Shown: positions 8,436 through 33,291, numbered from the stretch's first letter. The stretch is 36,348 nt of DNA from Octopus bimaculoides (GCF_001194135.2 NC_068990.1:76904350-76940697), one strand, 5' to 3'. The notes: generated by a model from the sequence alone, not told the origin. Numbers and translations: made by a program.

Positions 8436-8483
<48 letters not shown>

Positions 8484-9203: not shown

Positions 9204-9259
<56 letters not shown>

Positions 9260-9515: not shown

Positions 9516-9550
<35 letters not shown>

Positions 9551-9930: not shown

Positions 9931-10149
9931 TTTGCAGAATGGGTCCAGTGAGAATTTTCTTCGGGTCGAGCTGCCCATCCTGTTCAAAAGGTCCCTGAAT
10001 AAGGATGATGAGCAAAACACCCATGTTTCCAGAGGTGAATTATTCAAATACCAAAGGATTGTTATGATGCTCCCCCACTACTTCTGCTTGTGAACAGAGA
10101 TGCACTTATCAACCACTAAGAGACATGTTCAACTGGCACAGGTCAAATA

Positions 10150-10536
10150 TCTATTATTATTATTGTTCAGTAGTTTTATTTTTATAACGTGCTTCCACTT
10201 CACTACCGAGCGCAGCTCTGTGTGCCTTGGGTATGTGCTGTGGTTTGCTGTGATGCTCTTATGGTTACTGTATTGAAAGTGTTTTGCGTAGGATGTGTGC
10301 AGTGCCCAGTAGTGCAATTTTCTGTATGTTATATACATTTGTAAGTCCTGGTATTTTTGGTATGTATTTGTCTGAATATTTTTTTTTATACCTAAGGCAC
10401 CTACTATGATAGGAATTGTTTCTGTTTTTAGATTCCACATTCGAGTTACCTCTATTTCTAGGTCTTTGTATTTTGAAAGTTTTTCCATTTCCTTTAGAGA
10501 AACGTTGTCATCTGCTGGTATTGATACATCAATTAA
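10150..10536 (-). mobile_element. R4/Dong-like REL retrotransposon 3' end, truncated by gap
   Basis: LIDVSIPADDNVSLKEMEKLSKYKDLEIEVTRMWNLKTETIPIIVGALG (PD-(D/E)xK nuclease C-terminal part) with (TAA)n tail near 10150. Confidence 0.88.
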
Positions 10537-11527: not shown

Positions 11528-11565
11528 TGTCGTCATTGGTATCGTGGTTGTCGATTGAATAAGAT
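11528..11565 (-). CDS. Thr-rich linker micro-exon (38 nt, phase 1-0): LIQSTTTIPMTT
   Basis: cttttattttcag|AT CTT ... ACG ACA|gtaagtc; supplies exactly the 1-to-0 phase change needed between 16563 and 8675. Confidence 0.85.
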
Positions 11566-13981
11566 CTGAAAATAAAAGAAACAACAGAATATTACAGATT
11601 TATTTAATCAAATATTTAGTTATTGGTAAATGTTTGTTTAGCAAATACCTACTTAATATAGTTAAAGTTAAGTGCAAGTAGATTGTTAAGCAGCTCTTAT
11701 CTTAATAAACAGTCCTTAATACGGTCAGGTTCTGTTACACTGTGTAACACGATTTTTGTCCTTGGATAATAACTGTTATTTCCTATTTGCTTACCCCTAA
11801 AATGTATGAAAAAATGGCTATTTCTTTCAAACTTTGCTTTTGTTACGTTTATTCTAACCCCAAAGACTCTCTTTCAACAAATGGCTGTGATGCTCTACCA
11901 CTACTCCTGCTCATGATCAGAGATGCTCATATTGTCAACCACTTAGGGACATGCTGAAGTGGTTAGGGTTAAGCAACAGTGATATTGAGCAGTATATTTG
12001 CTTTCATGATATTTCTGATTCAGCAATTCAGCAATGAGTCTGTCTGAAATGTAATGGGAAATAAGTCATTTAAAAAATTATCGGTCGCCGTTGTGTAGAG
12101 AACTTTCCATGGACGCTATGTTGCAGCAAATTTGGCGCATGAACAAAACACATACACTATGTGCAATCGATGATCTATCTATCTATCTATCTATCGTCTG
12201 TCTGTCTGTCTATCTATCTATTTATCTCTCTCTCTGTCTCTCTCTCTTTATATNNNNNNNNNNNNNNNNNNNNNNNNNNNNNNNNNNNNNNNNNNNNNNN
12301 NNNNNNNNNNNNNNNNNNNNNNNNNNNNNNNNNNNNNNNNNNNNNNNNNNNNNNNNNNNNNNNNNNNNNNNNNNNNNNNNNNNNNNNNNNNNNNNNNNNN
12401 NNNNNNNNNNNNNNNNNNNNNNNNNNNNNNNNNNNNNNNNNNNNNNNNNNNNNNNNNNNNNNNNNNNNNNNNNNNNNNNNNNNNNNNNNNNNNNNNNNNN
12501 NNNNNNNNNNNNNNNNNNNNNNNNNNNNNNNNNNNNNNNNNNNNNNNNNNNNNNNNNNNNNNNNNNNNNNNNNNNNNNNNNNNNNNNNNNNNNNNNNNNN
12601 NNNNNNNNNNNNNNNNNNNNNNNNNNNNNNNNNNNNNNNNNNNNNNNNNNNNNNNNNNNNNNNNNNNNNNNNNNNNNNNNNNNNNNNNNNNNNNNNNNNN
12701 NNNNNNNNNNNNNNNNNNNNNNNNNNNNNNNNNNNNNNNNNNNNNNNNNNNNNNNNNNNNNNNNNNNNNNNNNNNNNNNNNNNNNNNNNNNNNNNNNNNN
12801 NNNNNNNNNNNNNNNNNNNNNNNNNNNNNNNNNNNNNNNNNNNNNNNNNNNNNNNNNNNNNNNNNNNNNNNNNNNNNNNNNNNNNNNNNNNNNNNNNNNN
12901 NNNNNNNNNNNNNNNNNNNNNNNNNNNNNNNNNNNNNNNNNNNNNNNNNNNNNNNNNNNNNNNNNNNNNNNAAATCCAATTTAAGATAAGAGTATCTTAT
13001 TATTATCTCCCCTTAAATTCAACCTCTCATGAAATTAGTCTTAACAAATTTTTTTTAGAGTAGTGTATTTTATTCCCATAATACTTAGCACAGGACAGAA
13101 GGTGCAGCCATTTGTACAGGTTAAAGAAGGAGTAAATATGCAGATAAGTATTCTCCCTTTGTTAACTGTGGTAAATAGTTTCATTTACTAGTTTTATTCA
13201 AGAAATGTATAACATATATAGAGGTTTTTTACTGTTTAAATATTATTAACTTACGTTTGACATAATAATAGTAATATATACTTGTATTTATAGGGGTAAA
13301 TTTAACAATAAATTATTAATTCCCGTAAAGTTTATATAGATAGGCGGTTTAATTTGACGTGCTTATAAAAAAAAGTCGAAGAGGGTTTCTTTAATGTTTA
13401 GCACTTTATATATATATCACCATTGTATTTTTAAGTGTTTAATTTTAATAAATTTTTATGAATTTTTAAAATTTTATAATTATCTAATTTTTAAAATCTT
13501 TTAAAATTTTGTAAAAATATATTAGGAAGTTATATATATATATTTATTTTTATTCTTATTTTTAATGAAGATATCTTAGAATTTGTAGGATTAAGTTGGA
13601 TCCGTTAATAATAATAATAAAGAGAAAATAGCCTGAAGACGCACTGGCGGATTTATGCATTAGGTATAGCCTAGTAAAACAAACCACCAGGACAGAAACA
13701 CGTGTAGTGTTGATTAATATTATCTTCTTTCCCCACAAACTAATAGCAGGTAAGGTATATATTTATATTTTTTTAAAAATATGTTTGAATAATTTATAAT
13801 TAATTCTAATGTACTTTATTCTTATTGTATGTTACAGTAGGCTTTAAAATGCTTACATTATTAGATTAGTATTTTGGATATAACTTTCTATGTGTACTCC
13901 AGAAAATAAGGTTGTCTTGAAATTGAAGTTGTGGTCCTATTGGTAAAATCCCAAATTTGTAATAATAATAATAATAATAAT

Positions 13982-14016
<35 letters not shown>

Positions 14017-14098
14017 AGTGTCTGTGTGGTAAGAAGCTTGCTTCCCAACCACGTGATTCTGGGTTCAGTCCCACTGCGTGGCACCTTGNNNNNNNNNN

Positions 14099-14137
<39 letters not shown>

Positions 14138-15254
14138 CGGAGGTGTACTTGCAAGGCAGGTAATTTTATCTGTATGTTAACACTAAGCCAATTTTTGCGT
14201 GGAATGCACATATGAACCATTCGAAAACATAAAGACTTACATAAAACATTTATCATTTATTTTTTTGGGTCAATATTTTCCTCAAACGAACTGCGACCTG
14301 GTCACTGACATGATTACACCAAATGATAAATAATAAGTTTTTAAGTGAAGCTAACAGTTTTTATCTTTTAGAACGGCTGTCTTATATGCTGCATTGTCAT
14401 AATATGTTCATATATATGCTCTCTTTATCTTTTTGTTTTTATATATTTACATATACACACGCTAATACACGACTTATAATACCCAATCCTGTTCATACAA
14501 CGACTGGGGCAAACTAATCGGTATACAGCACTTNNNNNNNNNNTCATACAACGACTGGGGCAAACTAATCGGTATACAGCACTTACTCGGTATTACCTGT
14601 ATCCTCCTGGGTTTGGTTAAATCCAATACCCTCCTCAACCTTATATATATATATATATATATATGTTTATCAAGTCCTTGATGGCGTTAAGATATTTCAT
14701 TAAGGACGCACCCATTTATCATTTTTTTAGGCAAGCTTTGAAAAACTTTGAGAACTTTGTGTTTTTTACATTAGAGATAAGTAGATTCTAAGGCAAATTG
14801 TGTTGTTCTATCTGGGGCCAGAAAAATATCAACCTCTGGTAGCTTCAGCGCATTTGTCTATGTCTTAATTAGTATATACAGTTTGTGAGGATGCTGAAAA
14901 TATGCCTACTTTTCATTTCTGTTCTAACGCTGTGTTGTGATTCTATGAATTTATTAAATGTTACCAAATCTTGAAATGCTATCATACACACTAGACCAAC
15001 CAGTTTTATTTAAAGTTTAATCGCATACTTATTGGTCGATACCAGTTTAAAAGTAAAGTTGATTTTAATCTTTACGTAGCGCGAGAAAGTTAGATTTATG
15101 TTTCATCAATATACTTATGTTTCAACAGATGTAAAATGGACCGTTACTATTAATTCATAAACAGATATTTAGCGAATGAATCTTGATTTCCGTTCTAACA
15201 GCAAGGGATAGAGTTAATATGAAAACTTTACGAAAATGCATATACATAATATTG

Positions 15255-15786
15255 AGTTCAAATTTTGGCACAAGGCCAGCAAGTTCGGCGGAGGAGTAAG
15301 TCGATTACATGAACTCTAGTATCTAACTGGTATTCAAAAGGTAAAATAATCCTTTCTACTATTGGCACAAGGCCTGGAATTTGTGGGGAGTGGGATGGTC
15401 AATTACATCGATCCTAGTACTTGACTGGCACTTCTTTTGTCGTCCCCGAAATGATGAAAGGCAAAGTCGACCTCGGCGGGATTTGAACTCAGATCATAAA
15501 GACGGACGAAATGCCGCTGGGCATTTTGTCCGGCGTGCTAACGATGCTGTCAGCACGCCGCCTTTGAAAAAAGTAAAATAATCCTTTCTACTATAGGAAC
15601 AACGCCTGGAATTTGTGGGGAGGGGGATAGTCGATCACATCGACCCCAATACTTGAATTTATCGACCCCGAAGGGATGAAAGGTAAAGTCGACCTCAGCG
15701 TTATTTGAACTCAGAACGTAAATATGGACGAAATGCCGCTAAGCATTTTGTCCGGCGAGCTAACGATTCTGACAGTTTGCCGCCTT
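15255..15786 (-). mobile_element. Three head-to-tail SINE family A copies
   Basis: Repeated aaaataatcctttctacta..ggcacaaggcctggaatttgtgggga...cggcgg.atttgaactcaga..gacg aaatgccgct..gcattttgtccggcg.gctaacgat at ~15340 and ~15575; partial copy at 15255. Confidence 0.85.
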
Positions 15787-16149
15787 ACACATGCATAATA
15801 ATAAAAGTAAATATTCCTGGATAATTGTCTCTACAAAACGCTGAAGTAGTATCTGAGAGCATATTGTATAACTGCAAACGCACCCGGAGTCTGTCTATAT
15901 CGATCTCCATATCCCTATAAACAAGTCTTCAACAGGGTATTTTGAGCGAAGAATGCACTGTAAAGGTGCTTTATTACCAACACAGTTCAACAAATAGCTT
16001 TCATTTATATGGTTTAGTTGAAGCGTTTGACCTGTTATACTCGTACCATGCGGGATATATATATATATATATATATTCAGTGCTATGTTGAAGGCAAGCA
16101 TTCAGAATGTATTTTAAAGAACACTACAATAATAATTTGTTGTTGTTGT

Positions 16150-16525
16150 TGTTGTTGGCACTCCGTCGCTTACGACGTCGAGGGTTCCGATCAACGGAAC
16201 AGCCTGCTCGTGAAATTAACGTGCAAGTGGCTGAGCACTCCACAGACACGTGTACCCTTAACTTAGTTCTCGGGGATATTCAGCGTGACACAGTGTGACA
16301 AGGCTGACCCTTTGAATTACAGGCACAACAGAAAACAGGAAGTAAGAGTGAGAGAAAGTTGTGGTGAAAGAGTACAGCAGGGTTCGCCACCATCCCCTGC
16401 CGGAGCCTCGTGGAGCTTTAGGTGTTTTCGCTCAATAAACACTCACAACGCTCGGTCTGGGAATCGAAACCGCGATCATATGACCACGAGTCCGCTGCCC
16501 TAACCACTGGGCCATTGCGCCTCCA
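16150..16525 (-). mobile_element. tRNA-derived SINE family C
   Basis: Minus-strand head ggaggcgcaatggcccagtggttagggcagcggactc..ggtttcgattccc (A/B boxes); 3' domain shared with 35560-35880. Confidence 0.85.
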
Positions 16526-16562
16526 CACAATAATAACAAATAAAAAGTATTTAACAACTTAC

Positions 16563-16713
16563 CGAAAGGCATATTGCAGATTTTTAAAAACAAGTTGTCC
16601 ACAATGAGGTTTCTCTGCGGTATCGGTGAAATTTTTAGTTTTAGAGTCCTTACTTTTGTACCATCAGGCGTGCTGAACAAGATGTTTTCCTGTCCTTGAA
16701 TCCCCTTTTTCAC
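16563..16713 (-). CDS. Exon: C-terminal part of the discoidin-like domain (151 nt, phase 0-1)
   Basis: ctgctttaag|GTG AAA ... CCT TTC G|gtaagtt; VKKGIQGQENILFSTPDGTKVRTLKLKISPIPQRNLIVDNLFLKICNMPF; phase matches the preceding exon; terminal Cys could pair with the N-terminal PC. Confidence 0.88.
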
Positions 16714-16939
16714 CTTAAAGCAGAACAGTACACACAGTTATTGATTTCCAGGTTATATAAAAAAAAACAAACAATATTTACGTCCATTTAAAAAAAAATT
16801 CCCACCGATGCGTATTGTTTAATCCAAGGCCAACAATCATTATTCAGTTTAATTTAACTAGCGAATTACTAATATTAAGAAAACTACACATAATAAAATT
16901 ATAAAAATGACCTGAGCGCAAGGGTTTCTAGAATAGGAA

Positions 16940-17350
16940 AATGGCCTTAAACTTTAGGGAAGGAGACTAGTCAATTACATTGATTTCAATGTGAAAGTGG
17001 AATTTATTTTACAGATCCCGAAAGGATGAAAGACAAAGCGAACTTCGGCGGAATTTGAACTCACAATGGAAAGGCGGGCGAAATGCCGCTAGGTAGTTTG
17101 TCCAGCGTGCTAACGATTCACCCAGCTCACCATCTTTACAAGGATGTGTAATATAGGTTAAACACCTGAAATTTGGGATAGGTGGGGGCGTTGGGTTAGT
17201 CTATTACCTCGACCTTCAGTACTTGATTGATATTTTTTTATTTCATCGACTTCGAAAACACGAAAGACAAAGTCAACTTCGGCGGAATTTGAACTCAGAA
17301 TGTAGGGTCAGAAGAAATGTCACTAACAATTCTGCCAGCTCGCTGCCTTA
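16940..17350 (-). mobile_element. Two SINE family A copies
   Basis: aaagacaaag.c.aacttcggcggaatttgaactca core at ~17030 and ~17265. Confidence 0.8.
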
Positions 17351-17469
17351 ACAACAACAACAACAAGAAGAACAGCAGCAGCAACAAGAACAACAACAAC
17401 AACAATGTAATTTTATAATTAGCCACTAGTACTAGAATACGTACAAAAATATGAAACTTTCAATAGGAA

Positions 17470-18260
17470 GCGAATGAGAAGTCGACACATACTAAAACAA
17501 TTTCCTGCCACCCAGCCATACTATTCAGGGACCTATTGAAGGTTGGCAACCAAAAACTCTCCAGCCTGTCTTCAAGTAAAGAGAATTTCGATGCGGCTGA
17601 CATAGCACCACAATGAAGCTCTGGCTGCCAGCGGTTATAAAGATTATATAGGTTACATGCCTGACTCTAATCCCATCAAGGGGAAACGCCATCAGAAATT
17701 GTTGTGGTTCACACTCTTTCAGCGGAAGCGTAAAACTTGAGTAGGTTACATGTTCCTTAGCTTAGTGAATAATCATTTTTCCCGCACGAATAGGTTCCGC
17801 AAAATATTTAACACTTTAAGAGTTTCTATTAGTTGTGTACTCAATATAAAGGAAAATATCAGTAGGTAATCCCACGTCTGAGACAAAGACAGAATGCTCA
17901 TACAGAGACAACACCACATGTCTCCTTAAGGCCACTACAACAAAAGAAAGTCGAGTTTGAGGCAGACGTGGTGTGAAAGGAGGACCCCTGCGAGTAGTCA
18001 AATGTGCGAGGGTATGTGTGCGCGACGGAAGATCCTTTCAAGAGCAGATTTAGCAACCATATATTCTCTTTTATATCCAAGAGAGACACAATGTTACAGT
18101 CTTGGCCAGTCGTTGACGGAAAGCGCCATGGATTACAACATCAAGTGGAGAGTCCAGGAGAAGCACAAACCTCACTTTAACAGCAATAGAATGTATAAGT
18201 TATGCTCGACGGAGAAAAGAAATAAGTTTATAGCTCACATTTGGTTAACAATGACAACAA
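17470..18260 (+). mobile_element. Decayed Penelope-like element (RT C-terminus to GIY-YIG region)
   Basis: Frameshifted peptides LSSSKENFDAA, NEALAASGYK, KRHQKLLWF, HFP..NRFRKIFN.LRVSIS, DYNIKWRV..KLCSTEK resemble PLE C-terminal motifs. Confidence 0.72.
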
Positions 18261-18353: not shown

Positions 18354-18616
18354 CTTTGTATCAACCACTATATCATTTTCTTTGACATAATCCAATTGAA
18401 AGCTGAGGGCGTTGTCTAAAACGAAACCTATTCCTAAAACTGTTACGTCATATTTTGTTTGGAAACTAATTTCTAACCATGAATTCGGTTCGCTCTTAGC
18501 GACCCAGTTCTTGTACGATCCTTTTAAAACATCGCGTGGCGGGGTAATAGAACTTGAAGTTGTAATTAATACTTCAGCTGAATTGTAATCGAGTGTTATC
18601 GCATCACACGGCGCAC
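18354..18616 (-). CDS. Exon: N-terminal part of a divergent discoidin/F5-8 type C (galactose-binding-like) domain (263 nt, phase 1-0)
   Basis: tctttgctatacag|GT GCG CCG TGT ... ACA AAG|gtaagat; stop-free APCDAITLDYNSAEVLITTSSSITPPRDVLKGSYKNWVAKSEPNSWLEISFQTKYDVTVLGIGFVLDNALSFQLDYVKENDIVVDTK. W..SEPNSWLEISF..VTVLGI..SFQLDY resembles the F5/8C pattern W..WLQVDL..VTGV..SF.L.Y. Absent from the ORF track. Confidence 0.88.
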
Positions 18617-19145: not shown

Positions 19146-19594
19146 AGAGTTATATTGAATAAATAAATTCCCAAATGTATTTGTATCCAAATTTTATCGT
19201 TCGCATTTCCCAAGCATGCAGGAGCCTCACTTATGACACGTAGTTCTCTATCATTTTGTGTCATAATCTATCCCCCACGGTTCCATATGCTATACCGTAA
19301 TTTATTGCCCGTGGTTAACTAAAACATTATATCATGATCTTCCACCTGCTGTTTCTTTGTTTTTTGAAGTTAGGGGGGAAAAAAAAAAAAATCAAACCGC
19401 ATGGAAGACAACCTAAGATCTGCGGCTTTCAGAATCATGAAGACATGAGGTTACCTCTCGCAATAGCAGCAAAAAGACGTATAAACGATGGGAGTTACGG
19501 TGTCCGGCTGGCAGGAATGAAGAGCTGAGTAAATGAGAATGTGTGTGTGGGTATGTTTCTGTGTGGTGCATGTGTGTGTGCGCGCATTTGTGTA

Positions 19595-19633
<39 letters not shown>

Positions 19634-19645
19634 ATAAAATCTTAC

Positions 19646-19675
19646 CTGTTGTAGATGGTATGGTTGTTTTAGGAG
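19646..19675 (-). CDS. Thr-rich micro-exon A (30 nt, phase 1-1): PKTTIPSTT
   Basis: tatatttttcag|CT CCT AAA ... ACA ACA G|gtaagattt. Confidence 0.85.
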
Positions 19676-20164
19676 CTGAAAAATATAATGATAATATGTT
19701 TATTCATAATAAAGATTTCATGACGAGAAGGTTAGAAACGACTGTCGGAGATTGGGATAATGTCCGCATCTAAAATGGAGACTGAAATAATTTCTATCAC
19801 TCTTTCCAGGGTCGTTAAAATCTTAGGGTAGGAAAAAATTCCTTCTTTGTAGAATTCTCTCAATATTTATAACAATTAACAATCTTTAATAAATAGACTA
19901 TAATGGCTGAGAGGAATAAAAGCGGAACCACGAAGCTTTACGTGCTCTTGAGGAATGTGGAAGGAAATGTACGGGAAACCGTGAAATTTGAATGTTTGAA
20001 ACAGAAAGGACTTTTGTAAAGAGGCCATAGGCTAGATTATGGTGATAAAATAGGGAACTGATTAAATTTACCATCCCCATGGTAAAACTCATCTGATATC
20101 AAATGTACTTGTATAGAAAAAATGTAGACATGTGACCACGAATATAGCAGTCTTGTAGAATATA

Positions 20165-20345
20165 GGTTTAAGATTAATCCTTTCTACAGTAAGCATCGAC
20201 CAATGCTCAGCTGGTACTTAATTAATCGACTATGAAATTATGAATTTCAAAGTCAATCTCGGTGGAATTTGAACTGCGCACGTAAAGACAGGCAAAACGT
20301 CGCTAAGTATTCTGTTTGGCGTGCCCACGATTCTGCTATCTGACC
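20165..20345 (-). mobile_element. SINE family A copy inserted in unit A
   Basis: aaagtcaatctcggtggaatttgaact..cgtaaagac..ggcgtgcccacgattctgc. Confidence 0.75.
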
Positions 20346-21793
20346 GATATGTTGTGTTGTAATTAATAAAGCAGCGATTTACACGAAAGCATTCCATGCT
20401 CATTTATGTGCTTACTCGAGCTAACAAGACAAATGTAACCAAAACCGGTGATACAATGATGTCTGTGGTTTCTGAGCATGTCTTATTCATGAGATGAGTG
20501 CAGTGTTCACATGCAGCAGTACATATGTAGTAAAACACAGGTGCATATATGAAATATATGAAATATTCTAATTATATTCTATTTATATGATTTATAAGCA
20601 CAATATTTAAAACAACTGCAATAAAAGAATATAGCTAGTTGTGAGATCTAGTGAAATCTAGCTAGGATTTCATGACAAGAAGGCGAGAAGCGATTAAAGG
20701 AAATTGGTTATTTCTCTTAATCTGAAGTGGTGTATGAATGGTTTCTATTACTCATTCCAGGGCCGTGAATAATTTAGCTTGCGAGAATACTCTTTCATTG
20801 CGCAATATTATCACTACTTATAAAAACGAACAGTGTTAAAGAAATAGATTCTAATGGTTTAATTTGGGGACTAAAAGTAGAACTACAACTGTTTTCGGTA
20901 TTTTCGAGATATAGGGAAAAGAACTATCCAGCAGACTGGTGACATAGTAATTCGAATATTTGTAACAAAGGAGATTCTGCTAAACAGACCACAAGCTAGA
21001 TTGCGTTGGTAAAATAGGGAGCCGATTAAATTTACTATTGCCATAAACTAGATGGTTTCTCCGAAGAATATTCGCGAATTTTCATTTCTGAAATTTCAAT
21101 CATAAATCTTTGGTCGACCTGAGGTTTTGATAGGCAACAATAGAGGATAATGAAACAGAGTGGAATTGAGCCAGAAATCAAGCTATGAAGCGAACTTTTT
21201 AGACATACATCCTACACGCACCCTTATTTACACACAGTGGGTGCATGACTGACCATTAGAAATGATATGAAACGTACCATCAATATATTGGACGCTTATC
21301 CGTCGCTAAGTATGGAAAATCTTAAAAGGTATTTCCTGAGAAGAATTAGACAGAGCTGATGTTAAACCCCAAGTATAATGTTTCCCCTTTAATGGAAAAT
21401 CACCAGACTTTACAAGTTACAATATAGAAATACTTGTAAATATATATCCACGAATGAAACAACCTTGTAAAATATAGAGTTATAATTAATAAAACACTGA
21501 TGTACAACAAAGTACTCCATCTTCATTGGTGTCCGGACTTGACATAACAAGATGGATGTAAAGAAAACGAGATGCTCAATGGTGTCTGTGCTTTCAGTGT
21601 CTTATTCATAAAATGAATGCAGTGTTTATATAGTGTAGTATATTTTTACTAAAATACATATATGACAGTGAATTGCGTTGCATATGTATTTAAATATGAC
21701 AGATAAGTACAATATTTCAAACGTCTGTAACTATAATATTTGTGTGAGATGTGTACATGAATATGCGTTTGTATCTGAGCAAAGAATGTTTAC

Positions 21794-21859
21794 ATGTCTG
21801 TTTTTTCGTTGTTGCGAATGTCGTCGTTGTTGTGGGCGTTGGTGTAACAAAATCAGGGT
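21794..21859 (-). pseudogene. Micro-exon C (66 nt, PDFVTPTPTTTTTFATTKKQT) with acceptor CAA instead of CAG; donor GTAAAC retained
   Basis: ttattttgcaa|AC CCT GAT ... CAG ACA T|gtaaac versus sister G atattttgcag|TC CCT GAA; open frame, 22 codons; no AG in the 60 nt upstream. Confidence 0.7.
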
Positions 21860-22409
21860 TTGCAAAATAAAATACAAGGATAATGCGTTGATGTGTAATA
21901 ATTCAGTGGTTGAGTGGTTTCATAAACGTTTGTTATTCCTATTGTACAATGTAGACTGTTGAAATTATAGTTTTAATCTCAGTCAACACGTGTAGGCAAT
22001 AAGAACGAGCTCAAGTCTTCTATGTTGACAAGACTACACACGACTGATGAAGATTGGGCGGATATCCTAATCTGAAGCAGTGTCTGAAATGTCATCCATC
22101 ACTCTTTTTTGGGTGTGAAGGATTTAGTTTATAAAAACACTCGTTCATTATACAATACGCCCACTGCTCATAACAAGGGTCAGTGTTTGAAAAATAGATT
22201 GTAATGTCTTGTATGAATGAATAAGAGCAAGAACAAGAATTCTGTTTGGGTACTTCAGGAGATGGAAAAAGAACTTATTCATAGATGGGTGACTTGTTAA
22301 TTGGAATGTTTGCAAGAAAGACAATTCTTCTGAAGATTTCATCGACTTCAAGTGATAAAAATTGACCTGAAAACAGGGGCCATATCAAATTTGACATTTC
22401 GATTGATTG

Positions 22410-22593
22410 GGTGGTGTTTGCATGTGTAGCTGTGCGTGTGTGGGTTTGTGTGTGTTTGTATATGCGTGTTCGTGTGTCTTTGTATGTGTTTCGGCGTGCC
22501 TATGTGTTTGTGTGTGTGTGTGTATGTGTGCGTGCGTGTTTCGGCATGCGTATGTGTTTGTGTGTGTGTGTTCGTGTGTGTGTATGTGCGTTC

Positions 22594-22660
<67 letters not shown>
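22410..22660. repeat. Compound (GT)n/(GA)n microsatellite; other long tracts at 5090-5168, 8295-8340, 8435-8525, 9205-9258 (ATT), 19600-19630, 24530-24574, 25933-25980, 36305-36348
   Basis: Directly visible. Confidence 0.98.
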
Positions 22661-22664
<4 letters not shown>

Positions 22665-22682
22665 TGAAAGAAGTAAACTTAC

Positions 22683-22715
22683 ATGGTGTACGTGTTTCAG
22701 TAGTAGATTCAGGTC
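22683..22715 (-). CDS. Thr-rich micro-exon D (33 nt, phase 1-1): [10 protein letters not shown]
   Basis: tatatttttcag|GA CCT GAA ... ACA CCA T|gtaagttt; canonical sites in homologous unit position. Confidence 0.8.
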
Positions 22716-23352
22716 CTGAAAAATATAATAATATAACGTTTTTTTTTTGTAAATATTCAATGAATGAATGATTTCAGAAGCGTTATTCACAATTCACATT
22801 ATTATTGCTATTGTTGCTTGAATGCCATACTCATGGACCATTGTATTCGTGACATATGAGGGAGAAAAATAGTCATACACGGGAGACCTGGCAATTCGAA
22901 TGATTGTAACAAAGGGGATTCTACTAAATTTTCCATAGACTAGATTGAAGCATTAAACCAGGGCACAGATTAAATTTACCATTGCCTGAAGTGCTATGTT
23001 ACCTCCAATGACCGTCCTCGTAGTTTATTTTATGAAATTTCACTCACGAGTTAGTGGTCGACTCAAGTTCATCGTAGAAAGCAGTTGTCCATGTGGCGAT
23101 GCAGTGGAATTGAGTCGCAAAGTATGATATGAAGTGACATACGTAAAAGTACAGCCATACATTCGCCCTTATTTACATATAGAGTGATCGTGACAGACAA
23201 TACCTAATGGCATGAAAAATATCATTGATATTGGTTCTTGTTATTTGTCACTGTGTCTTCGAAATTCTCAAAGGATATTGATATGAAGAATAAAACACCG
23301 CTGACGCTAAAATCCAAGCATTATGTTTTCCCTCTAAAATAAAAATCATATA

Positions 23353-23399
23353 GCAGTACATGTTGCAGTACATGTTGCAGTACATGTTGCAGTACATGT
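23353..23399. repeat. 12-bp minisatellite (GCAGTACATGTT) x ~3.9
   Basis: gcagtacatgtt gcagtacatgtt gcagtacatgtt gcagtacatgt. Confidence 0.95.
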
Positions 23400-23796
23400 A
23401 TATGTATATATACTTACGCAATGTAAATATATAGCTACGCATCAAACAGCCTTTCAAAGCATAGTGCTGCAATAAATAAAAGCAGCATTATCAAACCACC
23501 CCATCTTCATTGGTATAATCAAAACTAGTGACACAACGATGTCGGTGGTTTCGGTAAATGTTTTATTCACGAATGCAATGCTAACATATGGTTGTACATT
23601 TTAACTACAATACATGTGCATGTATAACATATTCCACGAACTCTCTTACAAGAACTGCGATGCACATTACAAAATATGTTTTCTTAAATATGAAATATAT
23701 GTATAAAATTACAAATATCTGTGACAACTATAACTAAAGAATTAGTGTTAGTGTTAGGGTGTATGTATGCGTGTGTATGTGTAAAGAAAATCTTAC

Positions 23797-23871
23797 CTGT
23801 TGTAGTTGGTACGGAAGGAATAGTTGTTGCAGGGGAAGTAGTTGTTACAAGAGTAGTAGCTGTAGTTGTAA
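23797..23871 (-). CDS. Thr-rich exon E (75 nt, phase 1-1): TTTATTLVTTTSPATTIPSVPTTT
   Basis: gttatattttccag|TT ACA ... ACA ACA G|gtaagattt; lies within ORF 23684-23887. Confidence 0.9.
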
Positions 23872-24527
23872 CTGGAAAATATAACAATACGTTATTTGTA
23901 TTAATTTCTAGGCTGGAAATTCAGAAATGTTAATAATTCTCACCTAACTCTGTAAATTGTTGCTGTCACAATATGAAACTCATGTCAATGGACTATTACA
24001 TAGCAGTCTACAAGCGTAGCCTTTGCTAGATTTCGCACAAAGATTTTAAGATGAGAATGCTACAAATGATTGACGGAGATTGGGCGAATACTCTAATCTA
24101 AAATGGTGTCTGATATGGCTTGTATCCCTCTTTCCAAGGCCGTGAAAATCTTAGCTTGGGAAACATTCCTTCTTTATGCAATTCTATCAATAGGTATAAG
24201 AATGAACAGTGTTTAACAAGTAGATTGTAATAGATCGTAATGACCGAATTAGAAGAATAAAAGTAGAGCCACGACTCTGAACAGTGTTTTCAAGGAATGT
24301 GGAAAGGAGAAATTGTTTATCGTCTGAGATGGTCGTGCTTGGGAATCCAGCCAGAAAATATAATGACGAATGCTTCTGATAGATCCTAAGGAGGAAGTGC
24401 TTGAGAATTATATGCCCACGATCCTCTCAAGAATAGAGGGTGGAGAACTGGATGGCTGGCCATTTCAAATATTTTTAGCTGAAGAATATATGTGTTAGTG
24501 TACTTCTAAGTGCGTGCGGGAGCGCAC

Positions 24528-24575
<48 letters not shown>

Positions 24576-24603
24576 CTCCGTGTGTTTGTAAAGGAAAACT
24601 TAA

Positions 24604-24633
24604 CTGTTATACTTTTTGTAGTAGTTCCAGTTG
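24604..24633 (-). pseudogene. Degenerate micro-exon F (30 nt, TGTTTKSIT) with both homologous splice sites mutated
   Basis: Aligned to sister units the acceptor reads gatttcgCAA (not CAG) and the donor TTAAGT (not GTAAGT); frame still open. Confidence 0.7.
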
Positions 24634-25930
24634 TTGCGAAATCTAATGATAATACGTTTATTTTTTAATAATTCAGTGTTTGTGTGGGTACAGAAACGTT
24701 AGTTATTTACATTATATACTGTAGACTATTGTGCTTTTTGTTTGAAACTCATGGACATGGACTATTGCACAACACTCAATAGGTGTAGCCAGTTGTTTGA
24801 TCTAGAACAATGATTAATGACGAGCAAGCTACAAACAATTGGCAGAGATTGGGTGAATACCCTTATACGAAGTGGTGTCTAAAATTGCTTTTATCACTCA
24901 TTTCGTGGCTATCAAAACCTCAAGTTACGAAAACGTTCATTTTTTATGCAATAATCACACTACTTACATGAATGAACACTGAATAACAAATAAATTGCAA
25001 TAAATTAGTATGGGACTAAGAGTAGAGGCACAACTTATTACGGTACTTTCGAGAAATGTGGAAGGGAAATATACACAGGCCGGAGACCTGGAACGTTTGA
25101 AACAAAGGAGATTCTGTTGAAGTCTCTATGGGCTAGAATGAGGTGTTAAATCGGTGGACAGATTAAATTTACTAATCCTTTAAAAAGGATCCTACCTTCG
25201 AGATATAGTCATGCAGTTTCATTTATCAAATTTTACTGACAAGTAAAAATTAGAGCGCGAAGGGATAGGATTAAACCGGTTAACATATGGAGCGATCTTC
25301 GTTGTCATACCGTCACGCATGCACCGAAATTCATATAACGGGACCATGGAAGGCTATACTCAATGGAATGGATGTATCATAGATATTTGGGTTGATAATC
25401 CATTATTTAGGTTTTGAAATTCCTAGAGGATCTTGATATCAAGAATAAGGCACAGCTGACGTGAAAATCCAAGCATTATGTTTTTCTTCTTTAGTAGAGT
25501 TATCTGATTTTATATGACTCTGTATAGAAAACAGGGTAAATGTCCCCGGCCCATATTCCTGCTCATCGCTATCGAGATAGAGGTAGCTGTCTGCAAGTAT
25601 GCACCCCCTGATTCAGATTGGCTGTTTTAGTGCATCTCTCTTGCCATCCTCCAGAGTAGTTCCTTTTCCCCTTTTGTCTGCTGGCGCCAGGGAGGAAACT
25701 TATGAGAACGTTTAACCGCAGGTTTCACGAGAGAGCTTATATATAAAATAGTGTAGATATATATCTACGAATAATGTCATGTAAAATATAAAGGCTGAAA
25801 TGGATAAATGCAACGGTGTTCATTAAATCACTCCATCTTCGTTGGTGTACGAATCTGACCTAGCAAGATGGATATAATGAAAACCAGTTTCACAATGATG
25901 TCAGTGGTTTCGGAACACATCTTATTTACA

Positions 25931-25976
<46 letters not shown>

Positions 25977-26005
25977 CGTGCGTGCGCACGTAAGTAAAAA
26001 CTTAC

Positions 26006-26047
26006 CTGTTGTGCCTTTTGTTGTGACTTTTGTTGTAATTTCAGGGA
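26006..26047 (-). CDS. Thr-rich micro-exon G (42 nt, phase 1-1): PEITTKVTTKGTT
   Basis: tatattttgcag|TC CCT GAA ... ACA ACA G|gtaagttt; canonical sites, in frame, inside repeat unit. Confidence 0.85.
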
Positions 26048-28418
26048 CTGCAAAATATAACGATAGTAATTTTTTTTTTGTAATATTTCAGTGTTTGAGT
26101 GGTTTCAGAAACATTACTAAGCTACCTTATACATTGTAGACTGTTGCTATTATTGTTTGAGGCTCACAGCTATGAACTATTGGATAATTGTCAACTCATG
26201 TAGTCAGAAATTACATCTAATGCCAGGATTTTATGACTAGAAGGCTAGAAACGATTAACGGAGCTTGAATGAATACCCTAACCTGAAGTGCTGTCTGAAG
26301 TGGCTGTCATTGTGCTTCTAGTGGCCTTGAAAGCTCAGCTTATGAAAAGTATCGTTCCTTTTGATATATTCCCACCACTTATACCAATGAACTATGTTTA
26401 ACAAGTAAATTTTAATGCCTCAGTTTGAGTAATAACAGCGGATCTACGATTCCTTTCGAGGCTTACGAGAAATTATTCATAAGTCGGGGACATCGGATAA
26501 ACTCCTCCACGGATAATCACGCAGTTTGTTTCATTCATCCATTTTCACTGACAAGTGGTTGGTCAATCCAAGTTTATGGTAAAAAAAAACAAACAAAAAA
26601 AACAGTTGTTGAGGGTACGATACTGTCCGATTAAACCCGATAACATGTGAATCGCATTTCATTACTGTATATGCGCAGAAATGTACCGATAACTTGATCG
26701 TGATAGATCAAATCCAATTGTATGAAACGCACCTTTCATCTTTGGATTGATGACCCGTCACCTCGTCTTCGAAATTCTCAAATGATACTGATGTCAAGAA
26801 CAAGGCACTGTTGACGATAGACTCTAACTATTGTGTTTTTTTCTCTTAACATGTCGCAGTATAGAAAGCAGCAAATATTCACGAACTCAACAGCAAAATA
26901 TAAGGTTGTAATAAATAAAAGCAACAATATACATCAAGCCACCCATTCTTCATTGGTGTATTTACTTAACCTAACAAGATGAATGTAGTCAATATCAGTT
27001 ACGTAAGGATGTCTGGTTTCGGTGTATGTCTTGTTCATAAAACGAGTGCTGTGTTCACATGCAGTAGTACCTTTTTATTGAAATACATGTGTATATATAA
27101 CATATTCAAGGAACTATGCCGCAACAAATGTGCAGCAGATTACCAATTTTTACCCTTAAAATATGAAATATAAGTATGATATATCAACGTTTCTCCTCAC
27201 TGCTTTAGAAATATAATTATCCAATATGCTAATATAGTTTTTCTCACCGCACGTATACTTTGAATGAATCAAAATATTTTGGTTCACTACTTTTAGTACG
27301 TTTGTCCCCTTCTTAACCATTTGCTTTTGTGTGTAATAGACTACCACAGGTAATTTTCCCTATTCATATATTCGCCTTGTTATACCTGTTATTGCTAATG
27401 CAGTAAAAAGTTTTATATCACTCTGTTATCTCTGTTCATAAAACTACTGGCGCTATCATGTTTTGCCTCAGAGTTACAAAAAGACTGAAGCATGTCTGAT
27501 GTTTGTCACCATACTTACCAATGACCAGAATCACTCCACAATACTTGCACTAATCTAAGTGTCAATTAATTTAATCATTTAAATTATATCGAATCACTGT
27601 TTCACAAATTAATTAATGAATTGATTTGATTATATAAAATATAAACGAAATTATCTGCTTTTCTTGATCAGAATTTATTATTAAGTTAATAATTGTTTCT
27701 TCGCTACTGTTTAAATTTTAATTAATTAAAATATTTCAGTTCTCTTCGTTAATATGTAACTCACTGGGCTAAATTTTATAACATGTCTATTTACCAGAAA
27801 TGGGTTCTCTTTGTGAGGAAATATGCGTTGTACTAGATAACCTATGCTCTACATCACACTAAATTACAAACCCTGTGATATATATTGTAAACTGTATTCT
27901 ATATCGGAAAATCTTTCTGTATATGTTACTATCGATGCTTTACAGATATAATGAAACCCGTGCTTAGGTGTCAAAATCTGTACTCTAAAAAAAATGATGT
28001 ATACTATGGAACAAAAACAATTATATGCGTTACGCAAATGTATGAAATAGGTACTTACATGGAGGTAATGTTGCTGTAAAGTAGAAGAGTTTCAGGAGTT
28101 AATGTAAGAAAATATAAAAAAAAAATAAACGAATAAACAGTAAATAAGAAAATAAAAAATACAATAAACATTGAAAATAAATAGTTAAGAAGCGGCTACA
28201 ATGCAAATGTGGCTACAAACAACACTTCATAATATATTGGGTAGCATACTCCTACACAACAGGGTGAAATGGACAGAATCGTTGACGAGAAACAAACCGT
28301 TTTAATGTCGAATAGTGGACGACCATGCTTACATAAGGGTTGCTTTCCATATGTATCCAATGGGGAAGAATTCATTTGACTGTATGGATACTGCGGTACT
28401 TTTACATATATAGATGCA

Positions 28419-28453
<35 letters not shown>

Positions 28454-29089
28454 ATCGCTAAGATAACATATGCTATCCGAATTATAGTAGCTGGACACCA
28501 AAAGTTTGGCAAAATTCTTTAACTTTGCGCTTGAACGCAGTATATTACTGGTATATTAGAACCTATGTACCAGATATTCAATTAACGGAGCTGTCTACTC
28601 ATTCAATTGTGATATAAGAAGCCGAGTATACCAAACACACTTCTATTCTTCAAGTAGTTTTCACGCAGAATCGGCACGACAGAGTATGTAACAAGGTCAT
28701 GTCTTTGAATTCCTGGTGCAGTCCATTCGACGGACTTTTCTACATAGCTTCCGCGTACGAAATTTTCCGTTATATCTTTTTGCGTCAACCAGATGCTAAT
28801 TTAAAGAATACCTGTCTAAGATAAGGAATAAACTGCAACTCATTGGTTGATGCATCGGTAACGGCACACCAGAACATCCTCAGATTTAATCCAAATACTT
28901 GAGACATAATAAATAAGAAGTGCTTTCTAGTTAAAAACATTTTGAGAAGTGGCAGTTATAAATGTCCTAGATTATTGAAACTTTAATATATCATTACTAT
29001 TCATCTAATAAGCTGACTGACCAACTTTTGTTTTTCTAAATTGAAGGAGACACCCGAAACAGCATTTTGAACATAGCCTACTGAACACT

Positions 29090-29710
29090 GCTTGTCACAG
29101 CTGACTAGTCTGCAGAATGCAGTCCCGACGTGAAGACAATTTCGAAACACCCTAAGCAGTAACGTTTTGAGTTAAACTGGGCAACAATACCACAGAAATT
29201 TATGAAATGCTCCAGATTGCTCATCGATTAACTTGTGTAGACTAAGCATCGGTTTTTCGTTGACACGGGAGGTTAAAAGATGATGGAGAGGAGGTAAAAG
29301 ACGATGAAAGGGATGGGAGATAGGGGGACGTCAGAATATCAGAGTGTGTTGAGAAAATTCGTGTGTCTATAAAGACAACAAGGAGATAGTGTAGCGACTG
29401 CATACAGAATTATTTATGAAGATCTGAACATGCGCTTAATTTGTGCAAAATTTGTTTCCAAAATGTTCAGTGATGAACAAAAGGAAGGACGCATTGGTGA
29501 CTGCAGGGAGATGGTTGTGCTCATTACCTCCACCCCAAAAGTACTTGAGTCTCTGATGACCTGTGACGAAAGTTGGATCTACTGCTATGATCCAAAGACC
29601 GAGAGACAAAATGTCCAATGGAAGCAACCTGGCTCCCCCAGACTTAAGTAGGCCAGGCAAAGCAAATCCATCGGGAAGCTCAAGATGATACCCTTTTTCG
29701 ACAGCTAAAA
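29090..29710 (+). mobile_element. Decayed mariner transposase, N-terminal half
   Basis: KLGNNTTEIYEML, VKDDERDGR, DLNMRLICAKFVSK, MTCDESWIYCYDP (first catalytic D), QWKQPGSP. Confidence 0.85.
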
Positions 29711-30039
29711 TTTTCTGAGGGAAGTAAAATTTCACACTATACTGTTTAGTGCAATAAAGTGCAGTCTGACTAGATGATGCACATTTAATTCTGTTTTTTA
29801 GTGTGAATGAGCGATGCTTAATTAACCTTCTGTGATGCAATGTGACTGTTTTGTTTTCATGTAACAATGTCATGGAGAGAGGCTGAGTTTTCAGTTATGC
29901 GATTGAGTAATTAACAATAAATAGTAAAAAATTGGGAGATGTACAGTTTGGAGTTGTGCTGTGCAATTAATTCATATAGAATTTGCAGCATTATGAAGTG
30001 CGATTGAGTGATAGTGCTATCTAGCTATTAATATTCTCT

Positions 30040-30300
30040 GCTCACTATTCCTGGAAGAGTCGTAGAGGTAGAGTTTTCAGGCTCCTCTTCCATAGAGCTT
30101 TACCAGAAGCAACCGTCATTAGACTTTCCGGTTGGATTCCTGAGCGTGACCAAGCAAGTCTACGAATGTTATCCAAGCAACTCATTCTTGGTCTACCCCT
30201 AGATGTCCTGCTGGTTGGCTCTCGAATTGAAAGATTTGTCAAGCGATTCTTTCCTGTGACATTCTAATCAACTGTGTTACAAGGTGTGAATATTAGGTGT
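30040..30300 (-). mobile_element. RTE-clade LINE 3' end fragment
   Basis: SRGRPRMSCLDNIRR...ASGKALW resembles the RTE C-terminal RGRPR..W.DNI...A.DR..W motif. Confidence 0.7.
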
Positions 30301-30354
30301 ACAGTTAATTCTAAGTTATACGGTGAAAGGGAGAGAGGGAGAGAAAGTGAGTGA

Positions 30355-30404
<50 letters not shown>

Positions 30405-31139
30405 GAGAGAGAGAGACAGTGAAAAAGAAAGAGAAAGTGTGAAATTTTGCTATAAAGCCTAAGTGCTCAATCAAACCGGCAGTGTGCAACGTCGTGAGAG
30501 TTTTGAAATGTTCACGCAAAATGATGCGTACATTGGGTTCTGTGTTGCAAAATGTGCTATAAAAGATGCGAACACTTACGTTGAGTTTGCGGTACTGTAA
30601 AAAGAGATTGTGGCAAGTAGTTTTTCATTTTATGTTTCATGTAAAAACGAAAGTGCAGAACAAACTGAAAGTTAGTATGAATTATTGTTGTGCGTACATA
30701 TATACGTGAAATATAAAACGTGTACAGAGTTTCACGTAAGCGATCATCAGACATTATACACATACATACATGCACACATGTAAACATATGAACACACACA
30801 CACATTTACATACACCTACATGTACATACATGTATGCATAGTACATGAACATAGACACACACATACACAGAGAAACAACTGAAAGTCAGCATAAATTGTT
30901 ATACGCATGTATCTATTATATATATTTGTATATATGAAATATATGTATANNNNNNNNNNNNNNNNNNNNNNNNNNNNNNNNNNNNNNNNNNNNNNNNNNN
31001 NNNNNNNNNNNNNNNNNNNNNNNNNNNNNNNNNNNNNNNNNNNNNNNNNGGATAAAAAATTAGAAAGGAAGAATGAGCAAGCAAAACATGTGGTATCACT
31101 TTAGCGCATGTAATTTATAATAATATTTTTTTATAATAA

Positions 31140-31352
31140 TAATTCCAAATTTTTGCCATATGGGCAGCTTAGGGGAGGGGATTAAGTCGATTACATCGAT
31201 CCCATTGTGTAAGTGGTACTTATTTAATCGATCCCGAAAGAATGAATGGCAAAGTCAACCTCGGCGGAATTTGAACTCAGAACGTAGTGGCAGACGAAAT
31301 ACCGCTAAGCATTTCGCCAGGGGTGATAACGATTCTGCCAGCTCACGACTTT
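31140..31352 (-). mobile_element. SINE family A copy
   Basis: ggcaaagtcaacctcggcggaatttgaactcagaacgt..gacgaaataccgctaagcatttcgcc..taacgattctgccagctc. Confidence 0.85.
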
Positions 31353-33177
31353 AATGTTTATTTATGATAATACTTAACTAAAATAATACTTACTAGATCC
31401 ATCGTCGGGGGTGAGTAAGATTATAATCTTTCTTATTCTCTCATTGATCTGGTAAGTACTATTGTACTAAGGATATTCCTTAATTATTCGATGATGGGAC
31501 TGATAACTTCTAATATTCTTTAGTATTGGTATTCCTTAATATTTCCTCTCTGAAGATGGAATAGTTAGCTTATATGGAAGTATTTACTCAATGACCTATG
31601 CGCCATATGCACAGCTATTCTAGAAACAGCTGTAAGAAACTATGCATTATTTCTTACTCCCTTATTTACTACATATATGCATCTGTATACATATGTAAGA
31701 TTGTAAGATGCATATTTACTCTGTCAACTCTGCAGTTATGCTTGAATTATAAATTACTTGCTCTAAAGTGATAGCACATATTTCCTCATACATATGTATA
31801 TANNNNNNNNNNNNNNNNNNNNNNNNNNNNNNNNNNNNNNNNNNNNNNNNNNNNNNNNNNNNNNNNNNNNNNNNNNNNNNNNNNNNNNNNNNNNNNNNNN
31901 NNNNNNNNNNNNNNNNNNNNNNNNNNNNNNNNNNNNNNNNNNNNNNNNNNNNNNNNNNNNNNNNNNNNNNNNNNNNNNNNNNNNNNNNNNNNNNNNNNNN
32001 NNNNNNNNNNNNNNNNNNNNNNNNNNNNNNNNNNNNNNNNNNNNNNNNNNNNNNNNNNNNNNNNNNNNNNNNNNNNNNNNNNNNNNNNNNNNNNNNNNNN
32101 NNNNNNNNNNNNNNNNNNNNNNNNNNNNNNNNNNNNNNNNNNNNNNNNNNNNNNNNNNNNNNNNNNNNNNNNNNNNNNNNNNNNNNNNNNNNNNNNNNNN
32201 NNNNNNNNNNNNNNNNNNNNNNNNNNNNNNNNNNNNNNNNNNNNNNNNNNNNNNNNNNNNNNNNNNNNNNNNNNNNNNNNNNNNNNNNNNNNNNNNNNNN
32301 NNNNNNNNNNNNNNNNNNNNNNNNNNNNNNNNNNNNNNNNNNNNNNNNNNNNNNNNNNNNNNNNNNNNNNNNNNNNNNNNNNNNNNNNNNNNNNNNNNNN
32401 NNNNNNNNNNNNNNNNNNNNNNNNNNNNNNNNNNNNNNNNNNNNNNNNNNNNNNNNNNNNNNNNNNNNNNNNNNNNNNNNNNNNNNNNNNNNNNNNNNNN
32501 NNNNNNNNNNNNNNNNNNNNNNNNNNNNNNNNNNNNNNNNNNNNNNNNNNNNNNNNNNNNNNNNNNNNNNNNNNNNNNNNNNNNNNNNNNNNNNNNNNNN
32601 NNNNNNNNNNNNNNNNNNNNNNNNNNNNNNNNNNNNNNNNNNNNNNNNNNNNNNNNNNNNNNNNNNNNNNNNNNNNNNNNNNNNNNNNNNNNNNNNNNNN
32701 NNNNNNNNNNNNNNNNNNNNNNNNNNNNNNNNNNNNNNNNNNNNNNNNNNNNNNNNNNNNNNNNNNNNNNNNNNNNNNNNNNNNNNNNATATATGTATAT
32801 ATATATAATGAGTGTACTAGAGGGTACCCAAAAGAAACCAGAATTTTGCAATATTATTCACTTAGTGTTCAAAATATTCTCCATTTGAAATATATATATA
32901 TATATATTCTTTTATTCTTTTACTTTTTTCAGTCATTTGACAATTATACAATTTCGGCTCTCTTCTTCACAGTTGAGGGCTTGACTAACAATCAATAGGT
33001 ATCCATATTGAACAAAAAATTGCAAAGTGTTTATATATAAATTTTGAAATGGTTGGATTTGAATGCAAATGACAAGGAATGATTTAACTCGAAGCACATC
33101 AAGCTATAAATATTGACATGTAAATAAAACCAACAACAGTAGAAGTAAAGCTAGTTATAGTATTTTGTGATACTTAC

Positions 33178-33291
33178 AAATTTTACAGTAAAGTTCATCA
33201 GAACCGTCTGTACAGTCTTTTTTATCGTTGCATTTCAACTTCGAATCGATACACTGTTTGTTGTTACAAGTAAATTCATCTACAGAACATG
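33178..33291 (-). CDS. Exon 2: canonical LDLa repeat (phase 1-1, 114 nt)
   Basis: gctgtttcag|CA TGT ... AAA ATT T|gtaagta; CSVDEFTCNNKQCIDSKLKCNDKKDCTDGSDELYCKI, 6 Cys plus DCTDGSDE; lies within ORF 33155-33391. Confidence 0.95.

Follow-up and report, generated by a model that had tools for sequence, protein, structure and literature searches.

Introduction

Known examples of linkers built from short exons include the variable exons of CD44, exons 4-6 of CD45 and the muscle-specific domain of NCAM, and the Ser/Thr/Pro (STP) exons of CD46 measure about 45 nt each. In CD46, an O-glycosylated STP segment is built from short alternatively spliced exons, which yields the BC and C isoforms (PMC7709105), while in DMBT1/gp340, tandem genomic units place Ser/Thr-rich, O-glycosylated SRCR interspersed domains (SIDs) of 20-24 residues between the SRCR domains (PMC3100851). 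In the PEVK region of titin, short duplicated exons, which gene predictors often miss, are differentially included and set the length of a spacer (PMC6469411). The micro-exon genes (MEGs) of schistosomes have short symmetric exons with long introns between them (10.1101/2023.06.21.545858). Here we analyse a stretch of 36,348 nt of the Octopus bimaculoides genome (GCF_001194135.2 NC_068990.1:76904350-76940697, below called the window), in which Thr-rich mini-exons, each set in a duplicated intron unit, lie between exons for LDLa domains and an exon for a discoidin-like domain.

We read this locus, with a probability of about 0.7, as a minus-strand gene for a mosaic extracellular protein whose linker mini-exons originated when exon and intron were duplicated together in tandem, and afterwards underwent birth and death. 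The predicted order of the product is LDLa, LDLa, Ser/Thr/Pro linker and discoidin-like domain and, further along, LDLa followed by another Ser/Thr/Pro linker. The window belongs to a draft assembly, has 36% G+C with many microsatellites and transposon remnants, and is interrupted by nine runs of N amounting to 2791 bases; all unit copies were counted within it.

Tandem duplication of exon-intron units

Self-BLAST of the window resolved positions 19540-27118 into seven head-to-tail units, all on the minus strand and with their blocks in one order, which measure 1061, 1193, 637, 1311, 789, 1400 and 1188 bp for units 1 to 7. In this comparison and in a BLAST of the window with a single full unit as query, matches of 80-480 bp between units have 65-81% identity and E-values as low as 1e-56; taken overall, the units are 57-81% identical. 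The ordered motif families (D4-D17) were recovered independently by a repeat search of the window. Read along the minus strand, a full unit begins with a mini-exon and its donor, continues with a (CA)n tract and then has intron blocks of about 1.3 kb up to the next acceptor. Unit 6 (24531-25930), as delimited by BLAST, is full-length at 1.4 kb and holds the pseudo-exon E2p, and unit 7 (25931-27118), with colinear BLAST matches to the other units, holds the intact mini-exon E1, its (CA)n tract and the upstream intron blocks. Units 3, 4 and 5 are partial, and unit 2 (20601-21793) has kept intron blocks only, its exon being lost and an acceptor remnant, ...ttattgcag, lying near 20620. An initial annotation of this DNA had described seven units of 0.6-1.4 kb with ordered intronic motifs; the description holds, as the sizes range from 637 to 1400 bp in colinear same-strand matches, and the self-comparison of the window that it had proposed as a check finds homology in all seven units.

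The flanking introns are homologous and colinear at the 65-81% identity given above, so the whole unit was duplicated, as is characteristic of tandem exon duplication. Neighbouring exons are mutually homologous, with exon ends and flanks alignable in all copies of a multiple alignment, and these alignments and the colinear BLAST matches bear out the earlier proposal that exon and intron were duplicated together. Divergence in the shared distal intron block amounts to 0.33-0.67 substitutions per site (Kimura two-parameter distance). The duplications are ancient, and the array is neither young nor similar to a variable number tandem repeat; given this age, copy-number variation between individuals is not expected. 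An ancestral unit of about 1.4 kb, comprising mini-exon, (CA)n tract and intron, would have been duplicated in tandem repeatedly and long ago; the duplications may have come about by unequal crossing-over at the (CA)n tracts.

The extent first proposed for the array, 19540-27100, stands as regards the presence of the units, but the units are not confined to it. A further full unit at 5090-6320 on the minus strand is homologous to those of the array (70-81% identity in BLAST, E down to 1e-47) and has an intact 24-nt exon, and in self-BLAST unit fragments continue at 3513-3727 and 1659-2076. Lying 14 kb off, past other exons, and having diverged no further than the array copies, this unit could be taken, in a window where interspersed repeats and transposon remnants are common, for a copy of a non-autonomous mobile or satellite-like element of 1.4 kb that carries splice sites and was exonised after repeated insertion. 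Such an origin is extremely improbable, as all nine copies in the window lie head to tail in the same orientation, each intact exon is in the phase required by the host gene, and neither terminal repeats nor target-site duplications nor coding capacity came to light; moreover, the partial units (3+4 and 5) resemble products of unequal recombination, not insertions. Tandem duplication within the gene is the origin that we prefer and follow below.

Intact and decayed mini-exons

Six of the seven tandemly duplicated units have a Thr/Pro-rich exon-like segment at the homologous position, with lengths of 42, 30, 75, 33, 66 and 30 nt, all on the minus strand. Four of them are intact and have phase 1-1: E1 (26006-26047, 42 nt) encodes PEITTKVTTKGTT between ttgcag| and |gtaagt, E3 (23797-23871, 75 nt) encodes TTTATTLVTTTSPATTIPSVPTTT, E4 (22683-22715, 33 nt) begins with GA, and E6 (19646-19675, 30 nt) encodes PKTTIPSTT. 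The splice sites of these four read tatatttt(g/c/t)cag| and |gtaag. The remaining two are pseudo-exons, of which E2p (24604-24633, 30 nt, TGTTTKSIT) has CAA as acceptor and TTAAG as donor, both dead, and E5p (21794-21859, 66 nt, PDFVTPTPTTTTTFATTKKQT) has an open frame with GTAAAC as donor and CAA as acceptor (dead). Exactly these six Thr-rich segments had been listed in the initial annotation, with the same sizes in multiples of three and the same phase 1-1, and the recurrent ends that it pointed out are present, since E1, E4, E5p and E6 begin xx-CCT and E1, E2p, E3 and E6 end ACA-G. Its phrase "four canonical exons" is exact as well: E1, E3, E4 and E6 have consensus sites, and E2p and E5p are broken.

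The further unit at 5090-6320 contributes mini-exon E7 (5214-5237, minus strand, 24 nt, phase 1-1), which encodes PTTAPTT between an intact tttttcag| and |gtaagt, and the 130 nt on its 5' side are 82% identical to the counterpart of E1. At the position expected for the next exon lies a decayed copy, E8p (~6403-6431, minus strand), which reads CCT GAA ACT ACG ACT GCA CCA TCT CAG and has no GT donor; directly upstream, a reverse-transcriptase fragment has been inserted. In total, the window holds five intact copies (E1, E3, E4, E6 and E7) and three dead ones (E2p, E5p and E8p). Phase 1-1 and a length divisible by three are common to seven of the eight, the decayed E8p having 29 nt. E7 and E8p follow the third LDLa exon, and the gene therefore repeats the pattern of an LDLa domain followed by Thr-rich mini-exons.

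Birth and death after the duplications would have left five copies intact, three decayed and one unit without an exon. The exon bodies appear to have been altered mainly by in-frame insertions and deletions while keeping a Thr/Pro-rich composition, as would be expected if composition and not sequence is selected.

In all three decayed copies (24633, 21859 and 6431) the acceptor GCAA replaces (G/T)CAG, and CGCAACA is common to E2p and E8p. The common change arose either by independent G>A transitions or by duplication of an already dead copy. The reverse-transcriptase fragment next to E8p (6407-7069, plus strand) is GC-rich and has a YADD motif (Pfam RVT_1, E=5e-4); its best database match is 70% identical, and a cuttlefish protein is a weak partial match.

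Reading frame and constraint

The spliced frame that runs from LDLa exon 2 through E1, E3, E4 and E6 to the discoidin-like exon at 18616 is open throughout, and the Thr-rich frame, which links LDLa exon 2 to the next exon, is the sole frame open in all four intact mini-exons. The first linker would be assembled from these phase 1-1 mini-exons of 42, 75, 33 and 30 nt. It has 60 residues and a high Pro/Thr/Ser (PTS) content, with Ser, Thr and Pro making up 40 of 61 (66%; 27 Thr, 5 Ser and 8 Pro). Unlike a mucin with long tandem peptide repeats in one large exon, it is divided among four exons and has no exact peptide repeat. The initial annotation called it a stalk, which is unproven, as no transmembrane segment was located, and we speak of an inter-domain linker. 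Its composition and the known mucin-type domains, e.g., the DMBT1 SIDs (PMC3100851), suggest an extended, glycosylated chain; the 60 residues most likely carry mucin-type O-glycans and may keep the LDLa pair and the discoidin-like domain apart as an extended spacer.

Both strands were scanned for STP-rich, phase 1-1 exons flanked by a polypyrimidine tract with AG and by GTRAG, with 100 shuffles as the control. The scan returned five exons, all of them from the minus strand, and the shuffles gave a mean of 0.4 and a maximum of 3. A plus-strand reading of the exons was rejected, as the scan offered no candidates for it. The CAG|...|GTAAG consensus is exact in five of the seven aligned copies, the flanking intron of which is 11-32% diverged from its own consensus. 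At about 20% change per site, roughly 17% of copies would be expected to have all eight splice bases, and by our own calculation the probability of finding them in at least five of seven is about 0.002. The broken copies bear several lesions each, and this bimodal pattern, together with the lengths in multiples of three, suggests that selection acts on five copies while the rest have decayed freely. From these features of the sequence we consider it quite likely that the four intact segments are used as exons, i.e., that they would be transcribed and spliced into the linker. The alternative that the Thr-rich segments are unused relics in one long intron, with LDLa exon 2 spliced directly to the discoidin-like exon (T+GT = Cys), would agree with the three of eight copies that are demonstrably dead and with the direct LDLa2-discoidin junction being in frame, but five copies have preserved all eight splice bases and an open frame despite 0.3-0.7 neutral substitutions per site (the probability of about 0.002 calculated above), and PTS linkers adjoin the related domain in homologous proteins. 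We therefore regard the relic explanation as highly unlikely and keep to the use of the mini-exons as exons.

Every mini-exon is symmetric, so most subsets could be skipped without a frameshift, and the initial annotation had envisaged four cassette exons whose regulated combinatorial skipping, in 2^4 combinations, could set the length of an O-glycosylated spacer. The number of combinations is too high, since 14 of the 16 subsets have an open frame, with linkers of 0-60 residues. If E1 and E3 are skipped and E4 is kept, which applies to two of the 16, an in-frame TGA arises at the LDLa2/E4 junction, where LDLa exon 2 ends with T and E4 starts with GA, and if LDLa exon 2 or E4 is joined straight to the discoidin-like exon, an extra Cys codon (TGT) is formed. 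Regulated skipping would be in keeping with the frame-neutrality of phase 1-1 exons, with the intrinsic difficulty of defining exons of 30-75 nt, with the (CA)n tracts described below and with the precedents of the CD46 STP exons (PMC7709105) and titin PEVK (PMC6469411). The RefSeq model of a nemertean homologue from Tubulanus, which lacks three of seven intact phase 1-1 PTS exons, points in the same direction, although this omission may be an annotation artefact. However, the splice sites of the four intact exons have a perfect consensus and equal the sites of the flanking domain exons in strength, which is typical of constitutive exons, and sites of consensus strength favour default inclusion. 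With the TGA and the extra Cys also counting against it, regulated combinatorial skipping seems unlikely, and we favour a linker that includes all four exons by default.

Several points weigh against the mosaic gene with selected mini-exons. With three of eight copies dead, constraint is not absolute for any one of them. The multiples of three could in part stem from slippage of ACN codon repeats instead of selection. No near-identical or orthologous protein was found in the collections searched, and a collection of 15 billion proteins, searched with the spliced product of 221 residues, returned a single weak LDLa match and does not contain the gene product; this absence agrees with the earlier suggestion that the system may be unannotated. 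Since the draft assembly has nine N gaps here, among them 30950-31049 and 31803-32788, further exons could be hidden in 27118-33178 or 8675-17533. Finally, the phase does not close between the discoidin-like domain, whose tentative second exon has phase 1 at its end, and LDLa exon 3, which starts in phase 0, so at least one exon is missing between 17533 and 8675 or one of these boundaries is wrong; a missing exon would probably lie in the N gaps 10537-10834 or 12254-12971.

In the intron just upstream of the acceptors, pairwise values hinted at stronger conservation than in distal intron, but a window-by-window profile had only a slight gradient (0.68-0.70 vs 0.56-0.73), and a conserved intronic element near the acceptors is for this reason not claimed. 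An Rfam scan at gathering thresholds and a tRNA scan, both of the whole window, were empty and thus gave no small nucleolar RNA or other known RNA for the conserved intron block, and no box C was seen there by eye.

(CA)n tracts downstream of donors

Each boundary between units has a (CA)n tract. The tract at 19540-19631, which reads TG on the plus strand, lies downstream of a mini-exon donor, and the other post-donor tracts, also on the minus strand, are at 25935-25972, 24531-24574, 22509-22614, 5091-5158, 8436-8509 and 35965-35986. On the transcribed strand, seven of the 12 clusters of (CA)>=5 tracts lie 16-82 nt 3' of the donor of an exon or pseudo-exon; only five such tracts occur on the opposite strand. 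Two of the seven post-donor tracts follow LDLa exons and are thus outside the repeat unit. Mammalian (CA)n tracts are hnRNP L binding sites that modulate splicing, according to PMC5959245 and the papers of Hui et al. that it cites. The tracts could act as substrates of recombination, as splicing elements of the hnRNP L type, or as both.

Domains flanking the linker

All domain exons described here are on the minus strand. LDLa exon 1 (36068-36175, 108 nt, phase 1-1) matches Pfam Ldl_recept_a at E=8.4e-8 with 32.8 bits, and LDLa exon 2 (33178-33291, 114 nt, phase 1-1), whose final base T joins the mini-exons, at E=1.3e-11 with 45 bits; each is bounded by ttttcag| and |gtaagt. Both exceed the PF00057 gathering cut-off of 24.1 bits and have six Cys and the SDE motif. 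LDLa exon 3 (8558-8675, 118 nt) has six Cys and SDGSDE and a partial Pfam LDLa match (E=0.004, 17.7 bits). It ends AAA ACA ACA G|gt, followed by (CA)n, as the mini-exons do.

The first exon of the discoidin-like (F5/8 type C-like) domain (18354-18616, 263 nt, phase 1-0) was recognised through relatives found by phmmer. The domain stays below the PF00754 gathering score (12.8-12.9 bits vs 28.2, E=0.12-0.13), and a three-frame Pfam scan of the minus strand over 18360-14130 did not find the rest of it. The second exon was instead found via alignment to homologues; it is placed tentatively at 17533-17755, ends ...LYLKTGWRVFGC and has weak splice sites, but a BLASTP alignment to XP_071944560.1 spans the junction, and its C-terminal L.G..VFGC motif aligns with the family. 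Cys3 and Cys157 are present in the domain. A profile made from the domain of the window and its homologues matches factor VIII C2 along almost all of the domain (E=0.0018), and five of the six members of the alignment match PF00754. An AlphaFold model of the domain is of low confidence (predicted local distance difference test, pLDDT, of 50; predicted template modelling score, pTM, of 0.54); its best Foldseek matches, which include factor VIII, CBM32, IFT25 and APC10, are all galactose-binding-domain-like, with template modelling (TM) scores of 0.45-0.5. A single-sequence model with a pLDDT of 41 was uninformative. On these grounds the label "discoidin-like" seems reasonable, and the location given at first for the array, between an LDLa pair (Pfam E=8e-8 and 1e-11) and a discoidin-like domain, is upheld, the latter being related to F5/8 type C via its homologues.

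Relatives of the discoidin-like domain

Among 1.8 billion proteins, phmmer found three relatives of the discoidin-like domain. XP_074658701.1 from the nemertean Tubulanus polymorphus (E=1e-11) and XP_071944560.1 from the crinoid Antedon mediterranea (E=7e-5) are uncharacterised proteins matched on repeated domains. As the crinoid protein itself matches F5_F8_type_C at E=8e-30, it ties the octopus domain to recognised F5/8 type C members. In both proteins the discoidin-like domain alternates with PTS linkers, and neither has a Pfam LDLa match.

The Tubulanus domain is encoded by two exons (273-276 + 171 nt), as in the octopus gene, and each PTS linker by its own phase 1-1 exon of 84-159 nt; the repeats are nearly identical, hence young. 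In each of the three inter-domain introns of XP_074658701.1 that lack a linker lies a PTS exon that is intact, bounded by ttgcag| and |gtaagc and open in frame. These exons, of ~129, 84 and 159 nt (GCA_964204645.2 OZ123235.1, locus 1937-2245, 4597-4868 and 5417-5755), are left out of the RefSeq model, which thus skips three of seven intact symmetric PTS exons. Either these exons are truly skipped, or the omission is an artefact of building a model across near-identical repeats. In a broader scenario, which we consider quite unlikely, cassette mini-exons would each be paired with a (CA)n tract bound by an hnRNP L-type factor, tissue-specific inclusion would set the reach between the LDLa and discoidin-like domains, and this logic would be shared across the family of alternating discoidin-like domains and PTS linkers, as the Tubulanus model hints.

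In Antedon, each domain is encoded together with its linker in one exon of 636 nt, and a PTS region of 620 residues is a single exon of 1860 nt, the classical mucin layout. The 3' end of the Antedon gene has two similar small PTS exons in tandem, of 129 nt (8310-8438) and 150 nt (8956-9105).

Other repeats in the window

An interspersed family similar to short interspersed nuclear elements, with a length of ~130-220 bp and copies 71-82% identical, is present at 15336-15786, 16925-17338, 20211-20344, 31169-31353 and 9077-9142; the first of these is a tandem pair, and one copy is inserted in unit 1 of the array. The open frames 2620-3054 and 29373-29648 on the plus strand, which interrupt introns of the gene, look by eye like remnants of Tc1/mariner transposases. 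Pfam gave no match for the former, and at 29373-29648, where only an overlapping minus-strand frame was scanned, no match either. The intron of unit 4 contains a perfect 12-nt tandem repeat, GCAGTACATGTT x3.9, at 23353-23399. In the intron upstream of LDLa exon 3, a pair of direct repeats (8887-9050 and 9762-9921), about 870 bp apart, is 84% identical.

Comparison with known systems

The initial annotation set the array apart from known mucin design and likened it to schistosome MEGs, but closer precedents exist in CD46 (PMC7709105), DMBT1 (PMC3100851) and titin PEVK (PMC6469411), and the design of a linker built from mini-exons is already known and not new. The likeness to MEGs is superficial, and the octopus gene is not one of them, as mini-exons make up only the 60-residue linker and the other exons, of 108-263 nt, encode folded domains. 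Whereas MEG coding sequence consists mostly of symmetric micro-exons, the neighbouring exons in the octopus gene have 108, 114, 263, 223 and 118 nt; and whereas MEG products are small secreted proteins with no known domains, the octopus product has LDLa and discoidin-like domains. In MEGs the micro-exons build most of the protein and are mostly <36 nt, while in octopus the mini-exons build the linker only and have 24-75 nt. The homologous genes of Tubulanus and Antedon differ from the octopus gene in having one PTS exon per linker (84-159 nt) or a shared 636-nt exon, and in having no LDLa match.

A close parallel in exon design is CD46, where, as in octopus, short, homologous and frame-neutral Ser/Thr/Pro exons (STP-A/B/C) stand in tandem beside extracellular modules. 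In CD46, however, splicing is documented and the segment is adjacent to the membrane, whereas in octopus the splicing is predicted and the linker lies between two extracellular domains. With DMBT1 the locus shares short Ser/Thr-rich linkers between globular extracellular domains and tandemly duplicated genomic units, but the DMBT1 units include the domain exon and vary in copy number between people, whereas those of octopus contain the linker exon only and are old. Titin PEVK resembles the locus as an array of short, repetitive and symmetric exons derived from tandem duplication; it differs from the octopus linker in being intracellular and unglycosylated, with ~100 exons and proven splicing.

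Against this background, the octopus locus offers a clean case of a disordered, probably glycosylated linker that would have grown as a symmetric mini-exon was duplicated along with its intron. Survival and decay of the copies can be seen next to each other, five being live and three dead. Low-complexity exons of 24-75 nt are likely to be overlooked by predictors, and models of this gene and of similar genes for mosaic extracellular proteins in invertebrates may lack linkers of this kind. If alternative splicing of the mini-exons proved true, the gene would be an invertebrate counterpart of the CD46-like and titin-like tuning of spacer length, a useful addition that would leave current understanding unchanged.

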